The notes beneath the pieces are model-generated. The model was given only the letters and a program-made list of their open reading frames with translations, did no database searches and was not told the origin of the DNA. DNA of 64,000 bases from Piromyces finnis finn (Eukaryota; Fungi; Neocallimastigomycota): NCBI GenBank assembly GCA_002104945.1, contig MCFH01000025.1, positions 310,001 to 374,000 on the forward strand. Direction: 5' to 3'. Position numbers and translations under genes: made by a program. Below are positions 1,496-30,727 of this stretch, piece after piece. Each line of letters starts with the position of its first letter. Position 1 is the first letter of the stretch.

Positions 1496-1659
1496 GCTCT
1501 TGGATGTTGCTTCAAACCTTTTGAACATTGACCATTGCTAGTCAATAGCAAAAGGCATGATTTTGGTTAGAAGTTTAACGCTCTTGGATGTTACTTCAAA
1601 CCTTTTGAATATTGACCATTGCTGGTCAATAGCAAAAGGCATGATTTTGGTTAGAAGTT
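1496..1659. repeat. 84-bp-period tandem duplication at the 3' end of the LINE ORF
   Basis: 1496-1575 matches 1580-1659 with 3 transitions. The peptide LLTKIMPFAID occurs twice. Confidence 0.95.
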
Positions 1660-4600
1660 CTGCTGTTACCGTCAAGAATGGTGTTCCTTCATAAATGCCC
1701 AATCGAATCTGACGCTTACAAAGTTCTTTCCATTCCCTTGAATTGTAATTAATATTGTTAAAACTTCTTCCCCCAAGAAGGAATTTAAATATTTTACTGC
1801 ACACACTAGAATAATCATACACATTAGTATTCACCGGATTATTAGAACTATTACTATCATTAAGTAAATTACTATCTAAATTAGAATTATTATCTTCACT
1901 ATTGCTATCATTACTAATATTATTATTTCTATTACTACTATTGTTATTATTACTATTGTTATTAATTCTACTACTATTATTGTTATTAGTACTATTGTTA
2001 CTATTACTATTGTAATTATTATTACTACTATTGTTACTATTACTATTAATATTATTACTATCTTTACTGATATTAGCATTTTCATTATTATTGATAGGAC
2101 TATTGGAATTACGTTGACTGAAAAAATTTAATAGCTGGACTATGGAATCATAATGTTTAATACGGATATCTCTAAATGTTGGACAATCTAATAACCAATG
2201 TTTAATACTTTGATCTCCACACTTGCAACATGGACAGTAGTTAGGACAAACTGGATCAACAAATTTGGCAGCTTTGGCAACTCTAGCATCCAACTTGTAT
2301 CCGCTTCTTGCTTTCAATAGCCAGTAGAAGCCATAGGCAAACTCTGGGTACTCATAACATAATTTAATAAAATCTTTAGTTTCAATAAATTTATTATCAT
2401 CATAATATTGCGCTTTGATTGAATTCCCTTTGAGATCTTTCCAATAAAAGTTTTTAACTGCTTTAACATCTCCATGTTTCTTTAATTTTTTATCAAGTGT
2501 CCTACTTGATTTGCACCACGTGTATTTTCTAAATTTAGGAATGTAATTGACAAGGTGTGAGATAATACAATTTGAGTTTTTCCATTTGTTAAAACATCTA
2601 ACCTGAGCTAACGCACATTTGGCTGACAATGGAGGAATATTCAAATCTTTTGAAATAGAGTATAAAGATATAAACGATACAGCTTTATGAACTCCGGCAA
2701 CCCATCGTATTCCTTTGTTAACATGCTTCTGAGCAATCCTAGACCTAGCTTTGTTGGATCCAAGTAATGGTGCAAAGTATGAAACTCTGCTAATCACTTG
2801 TGAGTTAAGTACTAGTTTTTTGAAAGGAATAGGAATATTAGGATTTCTTAAGAATTTACTGACTGAGAAAAGCCCTTTCAAAACCTTGTTATTAAGAGCT
2901 TTAATTACTGGTTTAAGGGACAGATTCTTATCAAATGGAACACCAAGATAAGTATAACAATCAGTAGTTGGAATGGGTTGTCCTGCTAAGTAAAATGTTG
3001 GATCTCTCTTGTTCTGATTTTCTATTGATTCAGGACGAATCACCATCGTTGAACATTTCTGGATACCAAATTCCATTTCATTATACAATGCCCATTCATT
3101 AACTCTTCTAAGCATCTTTTTTAAGCATCCTCTTGTTGGAGCACAAATAACTATATCATCTGCAAAAAGTCCACCACAGCATCGAGTGTCACCTAAACTG
3201 ACTCCTAGATCTTCGCACTCTCTAAATATATCATTAATAAAGAGATTAAAGAGAATAGGAGAAAGAGGGCAACCTTGACGGACTCCTTTCTTTACATCAA
3301 AAGATTTCGAGAATTGTCCATCTAATTTGACATTAGCCTTAGATGTTAAATATAAATTTTTGATAAATTGTAAACTCTTACCTCGGATTCCTAAACAATC
3401 TAATTTATGGAGAATATTACCGATTGGGACTGAATCGTATGCTTTCCTGAGATCTAAAAAGGCCAAATATGTCTCTTTATTATCTAATTGACGTCTACGG
3501 CATATTTCTTGGATTGAAATGAAAAGACTAATACTTTCTTCCTTTTTTCGAAAACCAAATTGTTCAGGTCTAATGAAATTATTCTTTAAACCATATTCTG
3601 AGATTCTAGTGGTGACAATTTTGGAAATCAACTTAATGCCATTATTGATAAGTGATATACCTCGATAGTTATCACAATCTGTCAAATCACCCTTCTTAGG
3701 AATAGAAACAATACTGGATTCATTCCATGAGTTGGGGAAATCTCCATCCCAAATACGGTTGAATAATTTAAGAATAAAATTTAAACCATGAGCATCATTA
3801 TCTGAAGTAGTATTACCAGAAGAATTATTATCTGTAGCATTATTAGAATCATTACTTGATGGAACTAATGCTTTGTAAAATTCAATTGGAATACCATCCG
3901 GACCTGATGCTTTATAATTTGGAGTAGTGAGGATAGCTGACTTGACTTCATCAATACTAATATCTTGGTTGATATCCCACTCATCAAGCATAGGAAGTGA
4001 AAAACGTTTATTCGTTGGTTCTTCATACCAATGCTCCAAATCAAGACTTACACCACTTGGGTCTGATGCAAGATTTTCGAAATGATCATGCCACACATCT
4101 AGTAGTTCTTCCGTAGCAACAACTAATTCTCCATTTTTATTTTTAATTGGTTGAGCAATAAAGAAAGAATCTTTTCCAATTTTTGCAGTTTTCTTGATCC
4201 ATTTCCAGGCCTTCTTAGGATTATGACTCTTCATATACTCACATCCTGTTTTAATCCAATGAAGATATTCTTGCTTCCTAAATTCATTACATCTTTTGTG
4301 GATGTAATCAATGAGTTTACGGTAGATTTTAATTCTTTTAATAAATTCATCTATATCATAAATTCTTTCTTTTTTAAATCTCTTATACAACTTCATTTTG
4401 ATTTTTTGAAGATTAAAAATTTGTTGTGAAATATGAAATGAAGACTTTATAACATTATTTGCTGAAGTAATACTGAGCTCGTCTGCAATTGAAAAAGCAG
4501 TTGAAGTAAACTCTTTGGAAAGTTCATCTGTAGAAACATTAGGATCGCTGGATTTTGCTGAAAGTATTTGGAATTTATTATGACTGAGAATAGATTCCTT

Positions 4601-6076
4601 TTCCTCAATACATTTTAATCTATTCCATTTCAGAATTTTCTTAGGAACATTAAAGTCATTAGAAAAATCTTCCATAGGAATAATTTTACCATTAATAAGA
4701 AGTGGCTTATGGTCTGATACAGGATAAAAATTATTTATAAATGATCCTGAGTGAACAAGATCTTTCATCTTCGAATTGATAAGAGCATGGTCAATGTCGG
4801 AAGATTGATCACCTCGAGTCCAAGAGATAGTAGACCCTCTAAGCGGAAGAATTTCCCAATCTCCTAATCCATTAGTTGATAACCAGTTGGATAATTTTAC
4901 TTTAGACATATTAAAATCACCAACAAGAATCGATGGATGGGATGAATGAGTTTGTAACCACAAGCGAACTTCTAACTTTGCATGATCAACATAGATGTTG
5001 TGATGACTATGAGGCATATAAACATTTCCAATCGAGCATTTGAATCTATTCCAGAGACTAAAAGTATAAATAGAAATAATATACTTTCCAGAGAAGTTTT
5101 CAAGTGAGGCTTGACATGAATTGTGAAAACCTAAATATAAACCTCTCATTCCCGGAACTGATTCGTCAGCTTTCTTGAAAAAGTGTCTATAGTTTCGCAA
5201 AGTAACACGACAAGGATAATCTGTATTCGATCCAGAACCATTACCAGTTTCTTGGAAACATAAGAATAATGGTTTGAAAATAGCTATGAAATAGCTAATA
5301 CTATCTCTCTTTTCGTGATTCCACCCATTGGTGTTCCAACTAAGACAAAAAGAAAAGTTATCAGGCTTGTTGGATGAGGAAGAATCGTTGCTATTATTAT
5401 TATTATTAAAGTCATCGTTATTAATGGATGATGCATCAGAGGAATAAGTAGAACTATTACTAGATGGCTGTGAAACTGAAGAACTATCAACTATTGAACT
5501 GTTATCAGAGTTGATAGAGCTATTAGAATTAATTGTTGAATGTTGAGATTGAAATTGTGTTTGCTGTAGATCTGGAATATTTTCATGATGGGAAACTTGT
5601 TGAAGATCCTGTTGAAGATCTTGTTGAAGATCGGATTGTTGATGAGATTGTTGAACTGATTGTTGAACTGATTGTTGAAATGATTGTTGAATAGAATGTT
5701 GATGTTTATTAGAAACTAAAATTTTACGTTTGAGAGTGGAAAAAGTGTATTTGTGATTCCTTCTACTACGAGCTGAAAAGGAAATTGAGGTAACTGAAAG
5801 TTTCTTCTTTAACATGTGTAAGATTTTAATACAATCTTTTGATGAACCATGAACCTTGACTAAGAAAAAGTGATCATTGAAAGTTTGAAAATATTTAACA
5901 CTAATAACTGAATTAAATTTATCTTCTAGAATAACCTCGAGTTTTTCCCATAGCATATTTACTGACCATGATCGAATACCACGGATAAAGAAGGAGCGAA
6001 TATCATCTAAGGGGATACCATAAGACCGGGTACCACGTCTGATATAATTCTTGTCTTTAATATAAAGGACTGACAT
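1538..6076 (-). CDS. LINE polyprotein: N-terminal extension, APE endonuclease, reverse transcriptase, C-terminal CCHC zinc knuckle
   Basis: APE motifs SWNTNG, FQET, VGDFN, DIDH, SDHKP. RT motifs KASGPDGIP, NYRGISL, QFGFR, FLDLRKAYDSV, GVRQGCPLSPILFN, LFADD, YTYLG. C-terminal CKCGDQSIKHWLLDC. Confidence 0.97.
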   Translation of the reverse strand: MSVLYIKDKNYIRRGTRSYGIPLDDIRSFFIRGIRSWSVNMLWEKLEVILEDKFNSVISVKYFQTFNDHFFLVKVHGSSKDCIKILHMLKKKLSVTSISFSARSRRNHKYTFSTLKRKILVSNKHQHSIQQSFQQSVQQSVQQSHQQSDLQQDLQQDLQQVSHHENIPDLQQTQFQSQHSTINSNSSINSDNSSIVDSSSVSQPSSNSSTYSSDASSINNDDFNNNNNSNDSSSSNKPDNFSFCLSWNTNGWNHEKRDSISYFIAIFKPLFLCFQETGNGSGSNTDYPCRVTLRNYRHFFKKADESVPGMRGLYLGFHNSCQASLENFSGKYIISIYTFSLWNRFKCSIGNVYMPHSHHNIYVDHAKLEVRLWLQTHSSHPSILVGDFNMSKVKLSNWLSTNGLGDWEILPLRGSTISWTRGDQSSDIDHALINSKMKDLVHSGSFINNFYPVSDHKPLLINGKIIPMEDFSNDFNVPKKILKWNRLKCIEEKESILSHNKFQILSAKSSDPNVSTDELSKEFTSTAFSIADELSITSANNVIKSSFHISQQIFNLQKIKMKLYKRFKKERIYDIDEFIKRIKIYRKLIDYIHKRCNEFRKQEYLHWIKTGCEYMKSHNPKKAWKWIKKTAKIGKDSFFIAQPIKNKNGELVVATEELLDVWHDHFENLASDPSGVSLDLEHWYEEPTNKRFSLPMLDEWDINQDISIDEVKSAILTTPNYKASGPDGIPIEFYKALVPSSNDSNNATDNNSSGNTTSDNDAHGLNFILKLFNRIWDGDFPNSWNESSIVSIPKKGDLTDCDNYRGISLINNGIKLISKIVTTRISEYGLKNNFIRPEQFGFRKKEESISLFISIQEICRRRQLDNKETYLAFLDLRKAYDSVPIGNILHKLDCLGIRGKSLQFIKNLYLTSKANVKLDGQFSKSFDVKKGVRQGCPLSPILFNLFINDIFRECEDLGVSLGDTRCCGGLFADDIVICAPTRGCLKKMLRRVNEWALYNEMEFGIQKCSTMVIRPESIENQNKRDPTFYLAGQPIPTTDCYTYLGVPFDKNLSLKPVIKALNNKVLKGLFSVSKFLRNPNIPIPFKKLVLNSQVISRVSYFAPLLGSNKARSRIAQKHVNKGIRWVAGVHKAVSFISLYSISKDLNIPPLSAKCALAQVRCFNKWKNSNCIISHLVNYIPKFRKYTWCKSSRTLDKKLKKHGDVKAVKNFYWKDLKGNSIKAQYYDDNKFIETKDFIKLCYEYPEFAYGFYWLLKARSGYKLDARVAKAAKFVDPVCPNYCPCCKCGDQSIKHWLLDCPTFRDIRIKHYDSIVQLLNFFSQRNSNSPINNNENANISKDSNNINSNSNNSSNNNYNSNSNNSTNNNNSSRINNNSNNNNSSNRNNNISNDSNSEDNNSNLDSNLLNDSNSSNNPVNTNVYDYSSVCSKIFKFLLGGRSFNNINYNSREWKELCKRQIRLGIYEGTPFLTVTAELLTKIMPFAIDQQWSIFKRFEVTSKSVKLLTKIMPFAID

Positions 6077-7112: not shown

Positions 7113-9110
7113 TTAAGCTTGTTCAACGTTTTCAAGGTACCATTGACCAAGGAATTCAAGAGACTTCTTTGGAATACGAGTACGTTCGTCATCGTTGTAG
7201 AAGTCAATGTAGGTCATACCGAAACGAGTTTCGTAACCGTTTTCCCATTCGAAATTATCAACTAAAGACCAGGCCATGTAACCACGGACATCAACACCAT
7301 CTTCGGCATAGGCAAGACGAAGGTTTTCAAGGTATTGAGCGTACCAGTCAATACGGTATTCATCGTTAATAATGGATCCTTCAATGTTGCTTTCATCTTC
7401 AATGATGGATTCATCGTAGGTGTCAGCGTATTCTGGTTGACCAATAGATTCGAAGTATTCCTTGGTAGCTAAATCGTTAGCACGGCTAACCTTGTAGTTT
7501 GGTTGGGCACAACCGTTTTCGGTAATGATAATACCGTTCTTAATTAAACCCTTGTAACGGTCAGCGAACCAGTTAAGACCAACACGGATAGTTGGACCGT
7601 ACTTGGTGTTCCAGGAAGAACCAGCTTGGGAACCAAGAGTTGGTGGAATGCAGGTCCATCCTTCACCACGACCACGGCAGTTATCATCCCACATATCTTG
7701 CTTGGAAGTTTCGAAGCTAGCTTCGTCATCAGTTGGTGGTTGGACGTAAGTACCATCTTCGTTCTTAACTTGTTCAGCCCAGTGAGCAGTGTAGGTGTTC
7801 CAACCTAAGAAGTCAGAAGATGATCCCTTTAAGAGCTTCTTTTCTTCTGGAGTGAAGACTGGCATATCCTTACCCATTCTTTGCTTGACGGAAGCTGGGT
7901 AATCACCAACCATTGGTGGGTCAGAGTACCAACCAATACGGAATTCAGCTGCTAAGTTGGCGTACTTCTTGTTGTTTTCTAATTCTTCTGGAGTGGTGTT
8001 AGCGTCTTGCCATGGGATTTGAGCTTCACCATCAATGGTAATACCAATAAGACCCTTTTGCTTCTTTTGGAACTTCTTACGGTAGACATTGACAGCCTTG
8101 GCGTGAGCAATAAGAATGTTGTGAGAACACCAGACATCTTCTAATCTTTGTGGAGCACGGTTAGCTGGAAGAACTTCAGCTCCCTTGTAGTATTGAGATG
8201 GACCAATTTCGTAGGAACAACCTCCTTCTAAATCAAGTCCAGTAGTGTCGTTTTGGAGCTTACGTGGAGCTTCACCAGTACATCTGTATGGAGCCTTACC
8301 TGGACCAAGACGGTAACCAGAAACACAGTTAACCCATGGTTCGTTAATGGTGATCCATCCCTTAACACGGTCACCGAAGGTTTCGAAACAGTATTCAGCA
8401 TACTTGGCGAAATCATCTTGGGAACGGTAATCTAACCAACCACCGTACTTTTCGTGAAGGGCGTATGGAAGATCCCAGTGGTAAAGAGTAGCAAGTGGAG
8501 TAATTTCGTTTTCAAGAAGAGTATCAATGACCATGTTGTAGTATTGGGTACCCTTTTCGTTAACGTTCCACTTACCATTAACCTTCTTGGCTTCACCATC
8601 TGGGAAAAGACGAGACCAAGAGATGGAGAAACGGTAGTGGTTAGCCTTCATGATCTTCATCATCTTAACATCTTCATCGAACTTGTGGTATGAATCACAA
8701 GCAACATTACCGTTGGTGGAATCTGGGTTGGTTCTGTCACCAGATTCAACGTTCTTTGGGTAAAGGTGGGTGAAGTGATCCCAAACAGATTCACCACGAC
8801 CATCTTCGTTCCAGGCACCTTCAACTTGGTAGGCAGCAGTAGCAGCACCCCACTTGAAGTCAGCTGGAAGCTTCTTCTTTGGAGTTTCTTCAGCAGATTC
8901 AAAACTAGAATCTTCAACATCATCAAGAGAACCGGTAACTTCAACAACTTCTTCGTCAGATGGAACGGCAACATCATCAGCACCAGCAACATCTTCGACT
9001 TCAGAGTTGAGAGCAACATCATCAGCAGCTGGAGCAGAAGTGTCCTTAACGATACACTTCTTAGCAGCAGTAACAGCTAATAAAGTAGTGAAAACAGAGA
9101 GAGTCTTCAT
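7113..9110 (-). CDS. bglA: Secreted glycoside hydrolase family 1 beta-glucosidase (anaerobic-fungal BglA/Cel1A type), intronless, no dockerin
   Basis: Signal peptide; FKWGAATAAYQVEG; acid/base TINEP; nucleophile ITENG; WSLVDNFEWENGY. Strong C-ending codon bias. Closely resembles Orpinomyces BglA from memory. Confidence 0.95.
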   Translation of the reverse strand: MKTLSVFTTLLAVTAAKKCIVKDTSAPAADDVALNSEVEDVAGADDVAVPSDEEVVEVTGSLDDVEDSSFESAEETPKKKLPADFKWGAATAAYQVEGAWNEDGRGESVWDHFTHLYPKNVESGDRTNPDSTNGNVACDSYHKFDEDVKMMKIMKANHYRFSISWSRLFPDGEAKKVNGKWNVNEKGTQYYNMVIDTLLENEITPLATLYHWDLPYALHEKYGGWLDYRSQDDFAKYAEYCFETFGDRVKGWITINEPWVNCVSGYRLGPGKAPYRCTGEAPRKLQNDTTGLDLEGGCSYEIGPSQYYKGAEVLPANRAPQRLEDVWCSHNILIAHAKAVNVYRKKFQKKQKGLIGITIDGEAQIPWQDANTTPEELENNKKYANLAAEFRIGWYSDPPMVGDYPASVKQRMGKDMPVFTPEEKKLLKGSSSDFLGWNTYTAHWAEQVKNEDGTYVQPPTDDEASFETSKQDMWDDNCRGRGEGWTCIPPTLGSQAGSSWNTKYGPTIRVGLNWFADRYKGLIKNGIIITENGCAQPNYKVSRANDLATKEYFESIGQPEYADTYDESIIEDESNIEGSIINDEYRIDWYAQYLENLRLAYAEDGVDVRGYMAWSLVDNFEWENGYETRFGMTYIDFYNDDERTRIPKKSLEFLGQWYLENVEQA

Positions 9111-11992: not shown

Positions 11993-11997
11993 GTAAT
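11993..11997. repeat. Target-site duplication GTAAT (left copy)
   Basis: The same 5-mer flanks the other end at 17207-17211. Confidence 0.9.
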
Positions 11998-12214
11998 TAT
12001 TAAGAGTTGTTTAATTTAGGTTTATAATTATGTCAACTTTATTAATATATTTTATGATAAAGAACTACTTGCGTTACATTCTTCTAAAACTACATGTATT
12101 TATACATTTACATTGTGGCTTAAACATATAATCAAATACAATATATACAAATACGTTTTAATACATTTCAATACATTTGAATACATGTGACATAACGTTT
12201 TACATATTCTAACA
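11998..12214 (-). repeat. 3' LTR (217 bp)
   Basis: Matches 16990-17206 except at 12004 (g/a) and 12169 (c/t). Sense strand reads TGTTAG...TTAATA. Confidence 0.95.
12038..12043 (-). terminator. Putative AATAAA polyadenylation signal in the 3' LTR
   Basis: AATAAA on the element sense strand, downstream of the LTR TATA-like box. The motif is weak evidence in AT-rich DNA. Confidence 0.4.
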
Positions 12215-12226
12215 TTCCCCCTCAAA
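12215..12226 (-). other. Polypurine tract (TTTGAGGGGGAA) abutting the 3' LTR
   Basis: Typical Copia-type GAGGGGGAA immediately before the TGTT start of the LTR. Confidence 0.92.
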
Positions 12227-12585
12227 CCTAATTTTCTACTAAGTAAAATTTGGTTTGCTGGTGAATATGTGCATTTTATTATTTCTAAACTATTAACTAT
12301 AAACTAAATCTAATGTTTAAAATTTTTATATTTCATTAATTGGAATTTAAAATATTTCACATATATTATTCGCTAATTGCTTTAAAGAATTTAAATATTA
12401 CCCTATAACTTCGTTTTTATGGATAAACTGAAAACCTTTGTATAATTGGGTAGTATTAAAGTTTAAAATTTGGATTGGATATTCATAAATTGTTATATCA
12501 TCCATTAAGGATTGAAAACCCTTCCGGTTTTACATTATCCTATAAACTATATTGGTAATCTCTCTGAGATTTACACAGAATTATA

Positions 12586-12741
12586 GACAACACATGGTTT
12601 ATCTCTTTGATTTTACGTCCTTATGACAACACATATGGATAACTCTTTTTGGTTTTACGTTCTCTTAACAACCTATGGTTAATCTTCTTGGTTTTACGTT
12701 CTTCGGACAACCTATGGATAACTCTGGTTTTATGTCCTTAT
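12586..12741. repeat. Four imperfect ~39-bp tandem repeats inside the LTR element
   Basis: Units start at 12586, 12625, 12667 and 12706; approximate consensus gacaacctatggataactcttttggttttacgtycttat. Confidence 0.85.
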
Positions 12742-13129
12742 AATTACAATTTTCTTTAGAATATTAGCATAATTGTATTTCAATCTATTTGTAAATACTA
12801 ATTAATAATGGTAAAATTTTAATTAAATTCTTAATAGTTATTTAGTTTATGTATATTGAATTTTAACATTTTCTTTTAGGTGTTTTTCCTTCCTTTTATG
12901 CCTTTTGTATTGATTAATTATTCTTATAATATTTAAGAATATTTTACTTTGTATTTGAAATTTTGTTCTTTTCATTTTTACATATTGAATCTTATAAATT
13001 TTTACAATTTGAATTTCAATTCATTCTATTTATTAAGCCTTAGTTTCTATGCAATGTTTTAGTTATTTCCAATGTTTAACTAGAAACAAAAATTATTATC
13101 TTGAATTTTAAATTTCGTATATTCACTAC

Positions 13130-13141
13130 TTCCCCCTCAAA
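13130..13141 (-). other. Second, internal copy of the polypurine tract
   Basis: ttccccctcaaa is identical to 12215-12226 (15/16 when extended), 915 bp away. Confidence 0.8.
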
Positions 13142-13824
13142 TCTAGATGTTTAGTAATAAATACTTAGATTTGAAAAAGAGAAATTTAAATTTCATAAAA
13201 TTTCATTCATTTTGCATCAAATTTTCATAATAATGAATAATTTTCCATAACATATACGATAAGTATTAATACCTATATAAATAATAAATAACATATTCTA
13301 ATGTTTTCATTCATTTTTCTCAATTGCTTATCCTTTAAAATATAGTGAAATAATATTTTCATGATAATATATTTTAATGTAGTGATAATCATAGAATATC
13401 AAACTAATGAATAAAATATTCCTCAATTATGTATTTCTTTACTTCAAATTAAAATAAGTAGATATACCAGTAAAATTATAACAAGTTAATATTGTAAGAT
13501 AATGACATTTAAAATATCGATTGTTGAAGAGAATAAAGTTCTTCTAAATTATATCGAAGTCGGCTCGGTTAATTAGAATGTCAGCTAATTGGTCGGCGAT
13601 CACTCACTACGTTGAAAGTGGCGATTTATATATGAGGTTACTAAATCACCGTAAATTATATTTTAAAACGGCGTCACAACATTCTTGAATGTTGGTAATA
13701 AATAAATATGATGAATCAATGTCATCTAAATCTAAGGAGCCCTTACTATGAAGGTGCTACATTGTTATTGATGGGACCAAATTAAATATATATAGGTCTA
13801 AAACCATCATTAATAATTATCTAT

Positions 13825-13950
13825 GAATATAACTCATTTCACGCTAAGTTAAATCATGATAAGTTGTTAAAATATTATTGAATATACCCATTTCACGCTA
13901 GGTTATTCAAAGTATATATATATGTAGAATATGCTCATTTCACGCTAAGC
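13825..13950. repeat. Three spaced copies of a GAATAT-n-CATTTCACGCTA motif
   Basis: Perfect CATTTCACGCTA at 13835, 13889 and 13936. Confidence 0.85.
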
Positions 13951-14631
13951 ATTTCTAACTTTAATAAATTACCTCATTTGAAATATTTGCTATGTATATT
14001 AGCAATAACAGCCTACGGGATGAGCATTTGACCAGTAATATATTTGCTTTATAGGTAGCAATAATTTAAATAATGCTTTTGAGGCTAAATATTATCTTAA
14101 AGTATTGTTATAATGATTTAATTCAAAGAATAGTATACTGGATTAAATTATATAATACTGATTTGAGTGAAATTATCATAAAGAAATTGATTGACATTTT
14201 CACAAGGATAGTTTCAATGTTCATTGCAATAGGATATTTTATATAAACTTATCAAATAATGTTTAATTATTCTAATTCATGTTTCTAATTGTATAAATTT
14301 TATGTATTTTCTTTATGTTCTATCTTTCCTCTATGGCGGAAAGAATATTTTCTCATTAAAATAGTAGTAGTTAAAGTATTTGAACATTTCACAAACAATT
14401 TATTTACTTGAAATAAATATGTATGCTTTCAATAACAATAATGCTATTTTATGAATGTTAATAAAACTAATTCTTTTAAAATAAAATGAATGTTTGTAGG
14501 TGTATGTATGTTTATGAATATTTACATAATTGAATATATGGATTTTTAAATGATAATGAATGTAAATTGACATAATGAGTAAATCAAAATCAAATTAATA
14601 AATTTAATAAATTGAGTAAATTAGGAGAATT

Positions 14632-16176
14632 CTAATATACAATGTTTATTTGCCAAAACATTACTGACATTAAAATAATAAATACATTTGCAAGAGAAAT
14701 ATATTTGAAGTTAACAGTTCCGTTTGAATTTAAATTTAAATCATCAATACTACTTAAGCCATTATTTGTAAGATAACTTGTATTTTCATTAAGATTATTA
14801 TCGATGTAATACTTTTTCATGTCGGTATTACAATAACAAGTATCGCATATATCAGTTTGATCATTTTTGTCAGTATCATTAGGAGTACTAGTTGATCTAA
14901 TGGAATTATCAGAAATACTAGTTGATCTAGTGGATCTAGTTGAAAGGTAGTTTGATTCAATTCTAAAAATTCTAACAGGATTTTTTTCATTTCCTCTGAA
15001 ACCCCAGTCATTGGATACCACTTTAAAAGTGGAGGCGCTAATTGTCACACCGTTTCCGGCAACAATACCCATGTGATGACCATCTGTAATAATGTCACCT
15101 GGCATACTATGTTTTATACCGTAATCGCCTTCTCCTATAAAATCAAAACCAGGAACATTCATTGAATACCAATCTTTGGTACATGGTGGTCGATCAAGTT
15201 TGCTTTTTGCAGCTAAAATGGGATGCTTAAATCCATTTAATTTATTTGGAGTTCCAACATCATAACCAGAAGCTAAAATAACTTCATAGACAAATAAATT
15301 GCATTTAAATTCGTCTGCATTGAAATATACATTGGCTTTTCTTTTTGCCTGTCTACTGTTACTAAATGCCCAAGCAGTTTCACCAATATTTGTAAAAGCA
15401 TTTAAATAAATTTTATTTTGTATAGAATTACTAGATTTCGAAACTGATTCATCTATGTAAATATATGATGGGATAGGAATATTTGAATTTTCATTGTTAT
15501 CAAATGAATCACGTAATTGTCGGTTATATGTAAAATTTAATGTATCTACTGATCTTCGGTTTAGCCAATTGTCTTTAAAAAGATAAGCGAGGGATATTTC
15601 ATCATCAAATTTATATGTAATTTTAAAAGATTTCCCACTTCCAACACAAACTTCAGGTAACTTTTCCTCAACGAAATTGTACCAAAAACCTTTTTGGTTA
15701 TTCCATTCAAAATCCCAAATGTCATAACCCGAAAAATGTATTTTCACTGTGTTCCAACCTATTACAGGAATAAAATTATAATCAATATCGACACTATAGC
15801 TTCCTAATGTTAAACACCAAATACCTCGTCTTGATCCTTGTGCAGCACTTATTGTTTCTTTATTTATAATTTTATCTATCGATATTTTATTTTTAATTGT
15901 TTGAGAAAGTTCAACTAGCATATTTTTATAAGAATCAGCATTTTTCATTTCTTCTATTAATCGCGGGGAGGCGGGTACCGTATTTCCTGAATTACCTCTA
16001 TAGTGAGAAATAGCATCTCTCAAGCTTGATATAGATTTGTGTGTCGATGGTGTTACAAATCCGCAGATATTATGTATCTTTTCGAAAATTGATTCTTTAT
16101 CGAATATAACTAAACTTCTGACTTTATACAATAAGAGAAAAAAAAATAATAACTTAAGAATTAATCTATTCTTCAT
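14632..16176 (-). CDS. 514-aa secreted, probably GPI-anchored protein: colicin M-like domain plus NlpC/P60/CHAP-like amidase domain (LTR cargo)
   Basis: Intact intronless ORF. Hydrophobic signal (aa 1-21). AISHYRGNSG, LGSYSV, DIWDFEWNNQKG and SGKSFKI parallel colicin M motifs. KCNLFV...PGDIITDGHHMGIV...NDWGFR gives a Cys/His dyad. S/T linker and hydrophobic C-terminus. The ORF is certain; the domain calls are by eye. Confidence 0.7.
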   Translation of the reverse strand: MKNRLILKLLFFFLLLYKVRSLVIFDKESIFEKIHNICGFVTPSTHKSISSLRDAISHYRGNSGNTVPASPRLIEEMKNADSYKNMLVELSQTIKNKISIDKIINKETISAAQGSRRGIWCLTLGSYSVDIDYNFIPVIGWNTVKIHFSGYDIWDFEWNNQKGFWYNFVEEKLPEVCVGSGKSFKITYKFDDEISLAYLFKDNWLNRRSVDTLNFTYNRQLRDSFDNNENSNIPIPSYIYIDESVSKSSNSIQNKIYLNAFTNIGETAWAFSNSRQAKRKANVYFNADEFKCNLFVYEVILASGYDVGTPNKLNGFKHPILAAKSKLDRPPCTKDWYSMNVPGFDFIGEGDYGIKHSMPGDIITDGHHMGIVAGNGVTISASTFKVVSNDWGFRGNEKNPVRIFRIESNYLSTRSTRSTSISDNSIRSTSTPNDTDKNDQTDICDTCYCNTDMKKYYIDNNLNENTSYLTNNGLSSIDDLNLNSNGTVNFKYISLANVFIILMSVMFWQINIVY

Positions 16177-16975
16177 TTTAAAGAAGAGGTAAAAATATAG
16201 GAAGTTACAATAAACAATTGTTAAAGAATGAAAAATATTTTTATTTCAATTTTCTGAATATTAATAAGATTTATAAATGTTACTATTTAAAAGGATTTTG
16301 AAATTATATTACTTAATTGTAAGCAATTATACAAAATAAAATTTTGGATTTTATTAGCTAATTTATACTATTTGTGGTGAATAAAGTAAGTTGAGAATGA
16401 AATTCTATTGTTTATTTAATTCTAAATTTATATTTCGAATTTGTACTTTATTAACTTTGAATTTAATTTTACAATATCTATTCATAAATAGTTTCTAAAA
16501 TAATTAATTCTTTTCAATTTTGAATACTTTAATTTATTTCTGAGTTTTAGGCGTTGGTTGTATTTGAATAAAATAAATTTTATGTTGGTTCAAAATTATT
16601 TAGAGTTCAATTTGTTTTGTTTATTTTTAAATTTAAAGATTTAAATTAAAAGTTAAAAAATTCAAAATTCAATTTTAGAATAATTTGCTTTCGGAATTTA
16701 AAATTGTCTATATTATTTTAGTATAAGGAAACTTTGTTTATATCAGGTAATGTTTTTCTATTTTAGATTGCCATTTCAATTTCAAAAGTTTGAAATCTCA
16801 AATTCTAGATCTCAAAACAATTTTACCAAACATAGATAATTTCAGATTAAATAATTTAATTCTGATAGTTAGAATTTCCTACAGTTTTCTCCTATGACAA
16901 AATGTCATATCCGGCGGTTTGATTCATCTTTCAGAGAATCATTTGAGAATTAATGAGATTCTCTCTTGAGAGTCT

Positions 16976-16989
16976 TGAGACTCTTAATC
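16976..16989 (-). other. Primer-binding site complementary to the anticodon arm of tRNA-Lys(CUU) (half-tRNA type)
   Basis: Plus strand TGAGACTCTTAATC directly abuts the 5' LTR. GACTCTTAATC is the conserved tRNA-Lys(CUU) anticodon arm core (recalled). Confidence 0.75.
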
Positions 16990-17206
16990 TATTAAAAGTT
17001 GTTTAATTTAGGTTTATAATTATGTCAACTTTATTAATATATTTTATGATAAAGAACTACTTGCGTTACATTCTTCTAAAACTACATGTATTTATACATT
17101 TACATTGTGGCTTAAACATATAATCAAATACAATATATACAAATACGTTTTAATACATTTTAATACATTTGAATACATGTGACATAACGTTTTACATATT
17201 CTAACA
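16990..17206 (-). repeat. 5' LTR (217 bp)
   Basis: 215/217 identical to 11998-12214; contains four 10-bp subrepeats (atacattt-like). Confidence 0.95.
17089..17096 (-). promoter_or_regulatory. Putative TATA box (TATAAATA) in the 5' LTR
   Basis: Mid-LTR position upstream of AATAAA, consistent with U3-R-U5 order. Low specificity in AT-rich DNA. Confidence 0.4.
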
Positions 17207-17211
17207 GTAAT
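17207..17211. repeat. Target-site duplication GTAAT (right copy)
   Basis: Matches 11993-11997. Confidence 0.9.

Positions 17212-20029: not shown

Positions 20030-30727
<10,698 letters not shown>

Follow-up and report, generated by a model that had tools for sequence, protein, structure and literature searches.

Can a long terminal repeat (LTR) retrotransposon of a fungus carry a complete antibacterial gene in the place of its own genes? This question is raised by a locus of the anaerobic gut fungus Piromyces finnis. We analysed a stretch of 64,000 nucleotides (contig MCFH01000025.1, positions 310,001 to 374,000; hereafter the window, whose own numbering is used throughout). A 5,209-bp LTR element occupies positions 11998-17206 on the minus strand, and its only long open reading frame (ORF) encodes a protein of 514 amino acids (aa). 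As a likely explanation of the whole locus, we propose a non-autonomous, copia-derived element resembling the large retrotransposon derivatives (LARDs), with a cassette slot that holds an antibacterial ORF. Its gag-pol would have been lost, and its LTR ends, primer-binding site (PBS) and polypurine tract (PPT) kept as cis signals. The LTR would drive a full-length RNA, an autonomous Ty1/copia family with identical LTR termini and PBS and a near-identical PPT would supply Gag, reverse transcriptase (RT) and integrase in trans, and new copies would insert with 5-bp duplications. The ORF in the slot would encode a secreted, probably glycosylphosphatidylinositol (GPI)-anchored enzyme that joins a colicin-M-like domain to an NlpC/P60 domain. 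Exchange of cassettes would most likely take place during reverse transcription, when co-packaged RNAs recombine through the homology of the shared coding ends. The fungus would presumably benefit from the enzymes.

Structure of the element

A repeat finder detected a single pair of long direct repeats in the region, 4,992 bp apart. Alignment sets the two LTRs at 217 bp each, the 5' LTR at 16990-17206 and the 3' LTR at 11998-12214, with 2 positions differing between them and the ends TGTTAG...TTAATA in both. Five bases are duplicated at the borders, GTAAT on the plus strand and ATTAC in the orientation of the element, at 11993-11997 on its 3' side and at 17207-17211 on its 5' side. The original prediction gave the span as 11993-17211, which is the element together with both target-site duplications. 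The 14-nt PBS, GATTAAGAGTCTCA, follows the 5' LTR (16976-16989, minus strand). At the other end, the PPT GAGGGGGAA lies immediately beside the 3' LTR, in a region (GGTTTGAGGGGGAA, 12215-12228) that is identical in all 21 copies of the family examined. The termini are TG...TA, not the canonical TG...CA. Because the autonomous copia element L076, described below, has the same unusual end, we take it to be a trait of the lineage rather than a defect.

The cargo ORF (14632-16176, minus strand) is intronless, runs in the sense of the element, and starts 813 nt downstream of the PBS. It is the sole ORF of at least 80 aa between the LTRs; gene call P0001 is the same frame begun at Met77. The original prediction had listed the 217-bp LTRs with 2 differences, the 5-bp duplication, the PPT and this ORF as the only one of its length, and each was confirmed position by position. 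Between the PBS and the cassette lies a 5' leader (16299-16975) in common with a lysozyme-type subfamily; over element positions 1-908, which take in the LTR and the PBS, the identity to the sibling copy L050 is 92.8%. The cassette itself (14730-16298, element positions 909-2477) is unique to the window copy, as delimited by comparison with its siblings. The last ~32 codons of the ORF (14635-14729), which encode a hydrophobic, GPI-signal-like tail, are part of the shared backbone and stand outside the cassette. Beyond the ORF extends a conserved non-coding 3' backbone (12229-14631) with no ORF of at least 80 aa, no RT homology and no Rfam match; the Rfam search of the whole element gave no match either. 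Its identity is 92-99% across the subfamilies compared in detail and ~90% at the lowest in other genomic copies.

The backbone includes a tandem repeat of a 39-nt unit, present about four times at 12581-12741, and in its middle a second PPT-like run, GATTTGAGGGGGAAGTAG, at ~13126-13143. A reading of the 39-nt repeat as a multiplied packaging hairpin was considered and is unsupported: the repeat was not found in the helper L076, and its fold z-score is -0.57. A scan of the element for bacterial promoters and terminators, which is irrelevant for a fungus, was unremarkable.

A young family and an exact empty site

We searched the P. finnis assembly (56.46 Mb, 232 contigs) for further copies; protein matches have locus tags of this species. 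The LTR is present in at least 41 copies at 97% identity or more, out of 136 candidates, and the internal region matches dozens of loci. The family has at least 23 copies, counted as the members among the exact matches to a 19-mer made of the LTR end and the PBS. Twenty further full elements were examined along with the window copy, 21 in total, with lengths of 4.2-5.5 kb. A 5-bp target duplication, distinct for each copy, flanks 19 of the 21 (18 of 20 excluding the window copy). Counted where both LTRs are comparable base for base, the LTR pairs differ at 0-1 positions in the other 20 copies and at 0-2 over all 21. None of the 21 has a gag or pol ORF, and tblastx and blastn comparisons of the backbone with ten copia loci, made for RT and gag remnants, gave low-complexity matches only. 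The family is young, recently active, multi-copy and non-autonomous. The original prediction had anticipated further copies with their own target duplications, and copies with other cargos; both were found in the P. finnis genome. A metagenome scan for the family-specific leader gave 0 matches.

The element resembles LARDs in that its cis signals are complete, its multi-kb interior has no gag-pol, part of that interior is conserved and non-coding, and the ends of a candidate helper match its own. The Ty1/copia class is defined by a pol with integrase before the RVT_2 domain, which the element lacks; its putative assignment to copia is made from only the cis signals that it has in common with L076.

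Four public sequencing runs (X1-X4) contain the cargo ORF, and their contigs were aligned to 5,801 bases of the window. In X2, which comes from another study, a contig joins position 11992 to position 17207 and skips 5,214 bases, that is, the element and one copy of the duplication. Five letters at the junction fit both sides, with no letters in between. The contig represents the precise empty site in another isolate, with the target present once, and the empty allele with one GTAAT that had been predicted does exist. X2 has its own copy of the ORF, which differs at 6 positions and by a 9-nt deletion.

A candidate autonomous helper and its primer-binding site

If the family is non-autonomous, some other element should supply its proteins. 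The 19-mer (the LTR end and the next 14 nt) has 37 exact matches in the genome and 84 with at most 1 mismatch, and the reversed control has 0. At least 7 exact matches lie ~3.2-3.7 kb upstream of an RVT_2 domain on the same strand, several of them with open frames of 1,333-1,542 aa. The PBS was claimed in the original prediction, and this position upstream of copia RT domains bears it out, as does the existence of an autonomous copia element, L076, with the same LTR ends and PBS.

L076, the one helper copy examined in full, is an intact 5.2-kb Ty1/copia element with 280-bp LTRs that are 99.6% identical and a 5-bp duplication. Its LTRs begin with TGTTAGAA, of which the first eight bases are as in the window element, and end with TTAATA. 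It carries the identical 14-nt PBS and a near-identical PPT (GTTTGACAGGGGAA, compared with GTTTGAGGGGGAA in the window element). In its ORF of 1,532 aa, Pol_BBD and the integrase core (rve) precede RVT_2, which is the Ty1/copia order; an intervening gag_pre-integrase match is below the Pfam cut-off. The blocks that the two LTRs share, read by eye in the window 5' LTR as CCAAT-like, TATAAATA and AATAAA, look like CCAAT, TATA and poly(A) signals. From these matching signals, cross-mobilisation of the family by such a helper is plausible.

The same 14-15 nt follow the LTRs of several copia families of the genome with different ends (TAATA, TAAAA, TAACA, TTATA). Therefore, the 14 nt are the true primer-binding site of the lineage. 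The PBS does not begin with TGG and is not of the 3'-CCA type, so the primer would not be a tRNA 3' end; the pattern suggests that the entire copia lineage uses a single, unusual primer of the non-CCA type. The PBS looks like the complement of a tRNA-Lys(CUU) anticodon arm. Three genome pattern searches, one of them intron-tolerant, found no such gene, and this identity is not claimed. ARAGORN found no tRNA in the window.

The cargo joins two domains of bacterial type

Database searches with the 514-aa sequence were uninformative: there was nothing significant in Pfam (E up to 1) or NCBIfam, and nothing was matched by sequence in the PDB. Exhaustive searching with HMMER brought up 303 relatives, none of them named, and resolved two independent domains at ~aa 40-200 (window 15577-16059) and ~aa 250-410 (14947-15429), both on the minus strand. 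We modelled each domain with AlphaFold2 from alignments of 36 and 41 relatives, respectively, and obtained predicted local distance difference test scores of 89.7 and 91.8.

For the first domain, the top 15 Foldseek matches were all M-class bacteriocins or the C-terminal domain of BtpeA, with E values of 1.5e-4 to 4.5e-3 over 14 chains of the colicin M class. VIA-align placed 12 entries of the class at Z 5.2-8.8, and the next unrelated entry at 4.1. The predicted fold is like those of colicin M, pectocins M1 and M2, syringacin M, PaeM and the C-terminal domain of the Bacteroides fragilis type VI effector BtpeA over ~150 residues. Unlike that class, with which its sequence identity is 8-15%, the window domain has no Pfam match and comes without translocation or receptor domains, in a protein with a eukaryotic signal peptide and tail (by eye) and a fused peptidase. 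A sequence profile of the 36 relatives found no colicin M chain in the PDB, and the ORF did not match PF14859. The ORF contains the motif D-I-W-D-F, of which the Trp, the second Asp and the Phe are kept in 33-36 of the 36 relatives. It stands at the place that matches D-K-Y-D-F in colicin M, whose catalytic motif is D-x-Y-D-F...H-R.

The second domain, of papain-like fold, aligned to NlpC/P60 structures with Z up to 12.5 and a root-mean-square deviation of 2.7 A over 109 residues. There were 73 chains at Z of at least 8, and the chains listed are without exception wall hydrolases of the NlpC/P60 type or their close kin; the NlpC/P60 enzymes of Trichomonas vaginalis (PDB 6bim/6biq, Z 11.8-12.0) are among the best. 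A weak family-profile match to 6bim was also obtained (E 7.6e-4), and the Pfam NLPC_P60 sequence model had no match to the ORF. The catalytic Cys is kept in 36 and the His in 38 of the 41 relatives, and both are present in the window ORF.

We suggest that the ORF combines a colicin-M-like and an NlpC/P60 domain of bacterial type and is plausibly antibacterial by its fold. The colicin-M-like domain is predicted to cleave the wall precursor lipid II, and the NlpC/P60 domain is predicted to be a peptidoglycan peptidase. A signal peptide is predicted at ~aa 1-22 (16111-16176), read by eye from the sequence and the alignment; it is unlike the one common to the sibling cargos. The last 32 residues, also judged by eye, show small residues, a spacer and a hydrophobic end as in GPI signals, and the protein is probably secreted and GPI-anchored. 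The original prediction of a bacterial-type anti-peptidoglycan gene stands as to bacterial type and plausible antibacterial role; the cargo is broader than was claimed, with its colicin-M-like domain joined to NlpC/P60.

The nearest relatives, 44-57% identical, come from metagenome contigs with a GC content of 19-20%, and fungal chitin-binding modules are present in some of them; they are probably from other anaerobic fungi. Three metagenome contigs with homologues (L073-L075) showed no flanking LTRs, and the LTR context was seen in P. finnis only. More distant relatives have an ordinary amino-acid composition, and one is on a gene-dense contig of ~50-55% GC, in keeping with descent of the domain from bacteria or phages. 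One of the metagenome contigs of 19% GC (L073:179-2953) encodes a 924-aa relative in which two tandem colicin-M-like domains come after long tandem repeats (153 and 135 nt). The arrangement would show that the domain is freely recombined in probable anaerobic fungi.

Different cassettes occupy the slot in sibling elements

Positions 1-434 and the last 2.6 kb are common to all elements of the family, and the middle varies. The cassette slot lies ~0.9 kb from the 5' end. In 6 copies the cassette is of the lysozyme type, with an ORF of 400-401 aa that consists of a shared signal peptide, a Cys-rich module, a glycoside hydrolase family 24 (GH24) domain and the C-terminal tail of the window type. 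The GH24 domain matches Pfam PF00959 over the full model at E 1e-23 to 1e-25, and its E-8x-D-5x-T pattern is kept in all three subtypes. In 3 copies the lysozyme-type front and tail surround a colicin-M-like domain, and these siblings are 55-56% identical to the window ORF over aa 42-214. Ten copies carry a frameshifted fragment of a seryl-tRNA-synthetase (SerRS)-like gene. All P. finnis matches to the window ORF, and 6 of the 7 genomic GH24 matches, are inside elements; those of the window ORF belong to the same or a related family, and those of GH24 to this one.

The window copy is a mosaic of a lysozyme-type leader, a 3' backbone 98.8% identical to a colicin-M-type copy, and its unique cassette. 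Its cassette matches those of siblings over one short stretch at 76% identity, compared with 93-99% in the flanking backbone. The 3' similarity to siblings begins at element position 2478, inside the ORF, and the same C-terminal tail closes the lysozyme and colicin-M-type ORFs. Between the colicin-M-like domains of the window copy and of L043, the synonymous divergence (dS) is 1.15, and the ratio of nonsynonymous to synonymous divergence (dN/dS) is 0.37. Since the backbones of the two copies are 98.4% identical, a dS of this size means that one cargo replaced another instead of diverging where it stood.

Because about half of the copies carry the broken SerRS fragment, the family captures genes in general and is no dedicated antibacterial vehicle; the antibacterial surface enzymes among its cargos seem to be retained. 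The claim that the element amplifies and spreads an antibacterial effector holds for the family, in so far as siblings have antibacterial cassettes. It does not hold for the exact window cargo, which is single-copy, and the share of SerRS copies limits it further.

Some details of the other cassettes were recorded. The SerRS copies (L046-L049 and L056-L061; for example L047:3147-3581, minus strand) form the most numerous subfamily. A host-like SerRS gene (G000:C1:662548-662899) is ~67% identical to the element fragment and has a ~50-nt gap, probably an intron. This gap is missing from the element fragment, as expected of capture through RNA. One copy has an ORF of 196 aa (L062:1301-1891) without a signal peptide or a Pfam match; the leads are weak and only to papain-like folds (PPPDE, LRAT, TseH-like). 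An older related element (L035:907-2190, on G000:C188) contains a Cys-rich ORF of 212 aa, a TGA stop, and an NlpC/P60-like ORF of 205 aa with a hydrophobic tail. It is a fourth cargo architecture, now broken.

Signs of selection on the cargo ORFs

The most serious alternative accepts the element as real and regards the cargo as a neutral passenger. Any RNA might be picked up by template switching, the ORFs would be intact through youth, and the fungus would gain nothing. The SerRS fragment, amplified to at least 10 copies in its frameshifted state, is what this view expects. The near-identical LTR pairs also favour it, in that many copies are too young for decay. We therefore compared the ORFs of diverged subfamilies with their own surroundings. 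These tests were simple pairwise comparisons, not site models, and the neutral expectation for the ratio of nonsynonymous to synonymous changes (N:S) was derived from the mutation spectrum of the non-coding DNA of the element itself.

Among the lysozyme subtypes, substitutions amount to 8.3-8.5% in the ORF, compared with 0.7-5.4% in the non-coding parts. The ORF has a single in-frame indel (0.8/kb), far fewer than the 2.4-8.3/kb of the adjacent non-coding DNA. Its N:S reaches 9.97, where 3.01 would be expected under neutrality, and this surplus of amino-acid changes is significant (p 3e-5). The changes cluster in two places, the Cys-rich module (28%) and the part that follows the GH24 domain (21%), and all 16 Cys, the signal peptide and the catalytic pattern are unchanged. 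These ORFs contain no stop codon, an outcome with a probability of ~0.001 after 102 neutral hits.

For the colicin-M-type pair L043/L044, the mutation-corrected omega is ~1, which agrees with neutrality; this pair also has no stops (P 0.011). Thus 72-102 substitutions between diverged subfamilies produced zero stops (P ~0.001-0.011), and all 10 antibacterial ORFs of the current family are open. Over the deeper divergence between the window cargo and L043, the dN/dS of 0.37 also speaks against a neutral passenger. By these comparisons, the enzyme ORFs seem to be held open and the lysozyme type to be diversifying. We regard a purely neutral cargo as improbable.

Other explanations and points of doubt

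An ORF of this kind might instead serve the element, as an env-like or accessory surface protein that moves particles between cells or hosts. The env-like ORFs of some LTR elements have a signal peptide and a membrane tail, and the window ORF likewise runs in sense and, by eye, has a signal peptide and a tail of the membrane or GPI type; in addition, the segment that encodes the tail belongs to the conserved backbone. However, the ectodomains have the folds of wall-degrading enzymes and not of fusion proteins, the SerRS copies were amplified at least equally well without such an ORF, and the autonomous helper has no such gene. This function is very unlikely. A chance arrangement of a host gene between two solo LTRs, or a misassembled repeat, has in its favour the general caveat that repeats can be misassembled, and it is hardly credible given the matching 5-bp duplication, the recurrence of the backbone at over 20 loci (a target duplication of its own is present at most of them), the exact empty site in another isolate, and the finding of no copy of the gene family outside such elements.

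Several observations weigh against the explanation that we prefer, a copia-derived element with an antibacterial cassette mobilised in trans. Ten of the 21 copies hold the frameshifted SerRS fragment, so junk was spread as readily as enzymes. With the window cargo in single copy, no amplification of its own is seen. Neither of its domains was recognised by Pfam or NCBIfam, Trp replaces the Tyr of D-x-Y-D-F, and equivalents of the His and Arg of colicin M were not identified. Enzyme activity, secretion and anchoring are predictions from fold and sequence. Outside the LTR ends, PBS and PPT, L076 and the window element are unrelated by blastn, and gapped global alignment of their LTR bodies matches them at ~170 of 217 positions. 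The primer RNA was not identified by the three genome pattern searches. Finally, in the sequencing runs the ratios of depth between the ORF and the shared backbone are also compatible with DNA copy number.

A bolder version of the preferred explanation can be put forward only tentatively, and we give it less than even chances. The family would be a retro-mobile cassette system for the antibacterial arsenal of the fungus. Recombination during reverse transcription would swap GH24, colicin-M-like and NlpC/P60 modules between a fixed signal/Cys-rich front and an anchor tail, and retrotransposition would set the copy number. Selection by gut bacteria would drive the fast amino-acid change, and the colicin-M-class enzymes would be the first in eukaryotes.

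Evidence for expression

The contigs of runs X1, X3 and X4 are collinear on the ORF with 0-1 differences, at 14662-16362, 14756-16147 and 14821-16241, respectively. These runs have zero depth in both flanks, and their contig sets amount to 28-45 Mb, compared with the 56 Mb of the genome. One contig of X3 has the order PPT-LTR-PBS, and in X1 15 letters of the PBS overhang the LTR end. Contigs of this order would be produced if the R-U5 and U3-R ends of full-length LTR transcripts were merged. We suspect that X1, X3 and X4 are transcriptomes, which is a guess, as the kind of run is not on record. Transcription of the ORF, presumably from the LTR, is likely.

The contigs of three runs stop abruptly at 13979, and a gap in coverage follows at 14028-14221. 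These could reflect an abundant shorter RNA of the 3' half, or mere assembly breaks.

Comparison with known systems

Gene capture by LTR elements is known from maize Bs1, from LARDs in plants, and from the capture of oncogenes by retroviruses. It has so far been described mainly for retroviral oncogenes and for plants, where the captures are mostly gene fragments. Like those elements, the window element keeps LTRs, PBS and PPT, has lost gag-pol, contains foreign sequence in sense between the LTRs, and would be copied by helper proteins. Unlike Bs1 and LARDs, its family has complete, open ORFs for secreted enzymes, one fixed slot, shared coding ends and signs of selection. No fungal LTR element with such a cargo was found in the literature searched. 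Our limited literature search also found no report of the colicin M class in eukaryotes or anaerobic fungi.

Transposons that multiply secreted proteins acting on another organism have precedents in fungi. In Blumeria, the EKA/AVRk1 effectors ride on long interspersed nuclear elements (LINEs). ToxB is amplified on a Helitron-like element (bioRxiv 10.1101/2025.11.13.688278). In those cases the vehicle is a LINE or a rolling-circle DNA element and the protein is directed at plants, whereas the present family is an LTR element with swappable cassettes, directed at the bacterial wall.

The cargo can also be compared with wall enzymes of bacterial or phage type in other eukaryotes that live among bacteria. 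The dae genes of ticks are bacterial wall hydrolases acquired by a eukaryote, and the NlpC/P60 proteins of Trichomonas are a similar case. Transfers of GH25 lysozymes to eukaryotes (PMC4241558) and a phage lysozyme in bivalves (PMC5303276) have been described. All of these are ordinary chromosomal genes, whereas the detectable copies of the window ORF in P. finnis are inside mobile LTR elements.

Many GH24 lysozymes have been noted in Piromyces, with no link to transposons (PMC8778642). If our explanation is true, transposon copying and not ordinary duplication explains this abundance. Whole, functional genes could then be transported, multiplied and reshuffled by a fungal LTR retrotransposon. 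Anaerobic gut fungi would possess an undescribed set of enzymes directed at the bacterial wall, colicin-M-like ones included, which would bear on the persistence of the fungi among the dense bacteria of the rumen and hindgut and might perhaps be useful as lytic enzymes. Because helper and passenger share only LTR ends, PBS and PPT, the family also lends itself naturally to asking which cis signals are the minimum for borrowing copia proteins.

Neighbouring features of the window

Other features were noted around the element. On the minus strand at 1538-6076 there is an ORF of 1,512 aa with an RVT_1 domain only, probably from a non-LTR retroelement. Downstream of it, a 255-nt stretch (910-1164) repeats its coding part 2537-2791 at 93% identity. 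A glycoside hydrolase family 1 gene lies at 7113-9110 on the minus strand, with 40-45% GC within DNA of 13-20% GC. On the plus strand, 22731-30727 holds ORFs of 1,245 and 1,366 aa with no Pfam match and a strong purine skew, and the 1,366-aa ORF ends in a long array of 9-nt repeats (~29737-30700).

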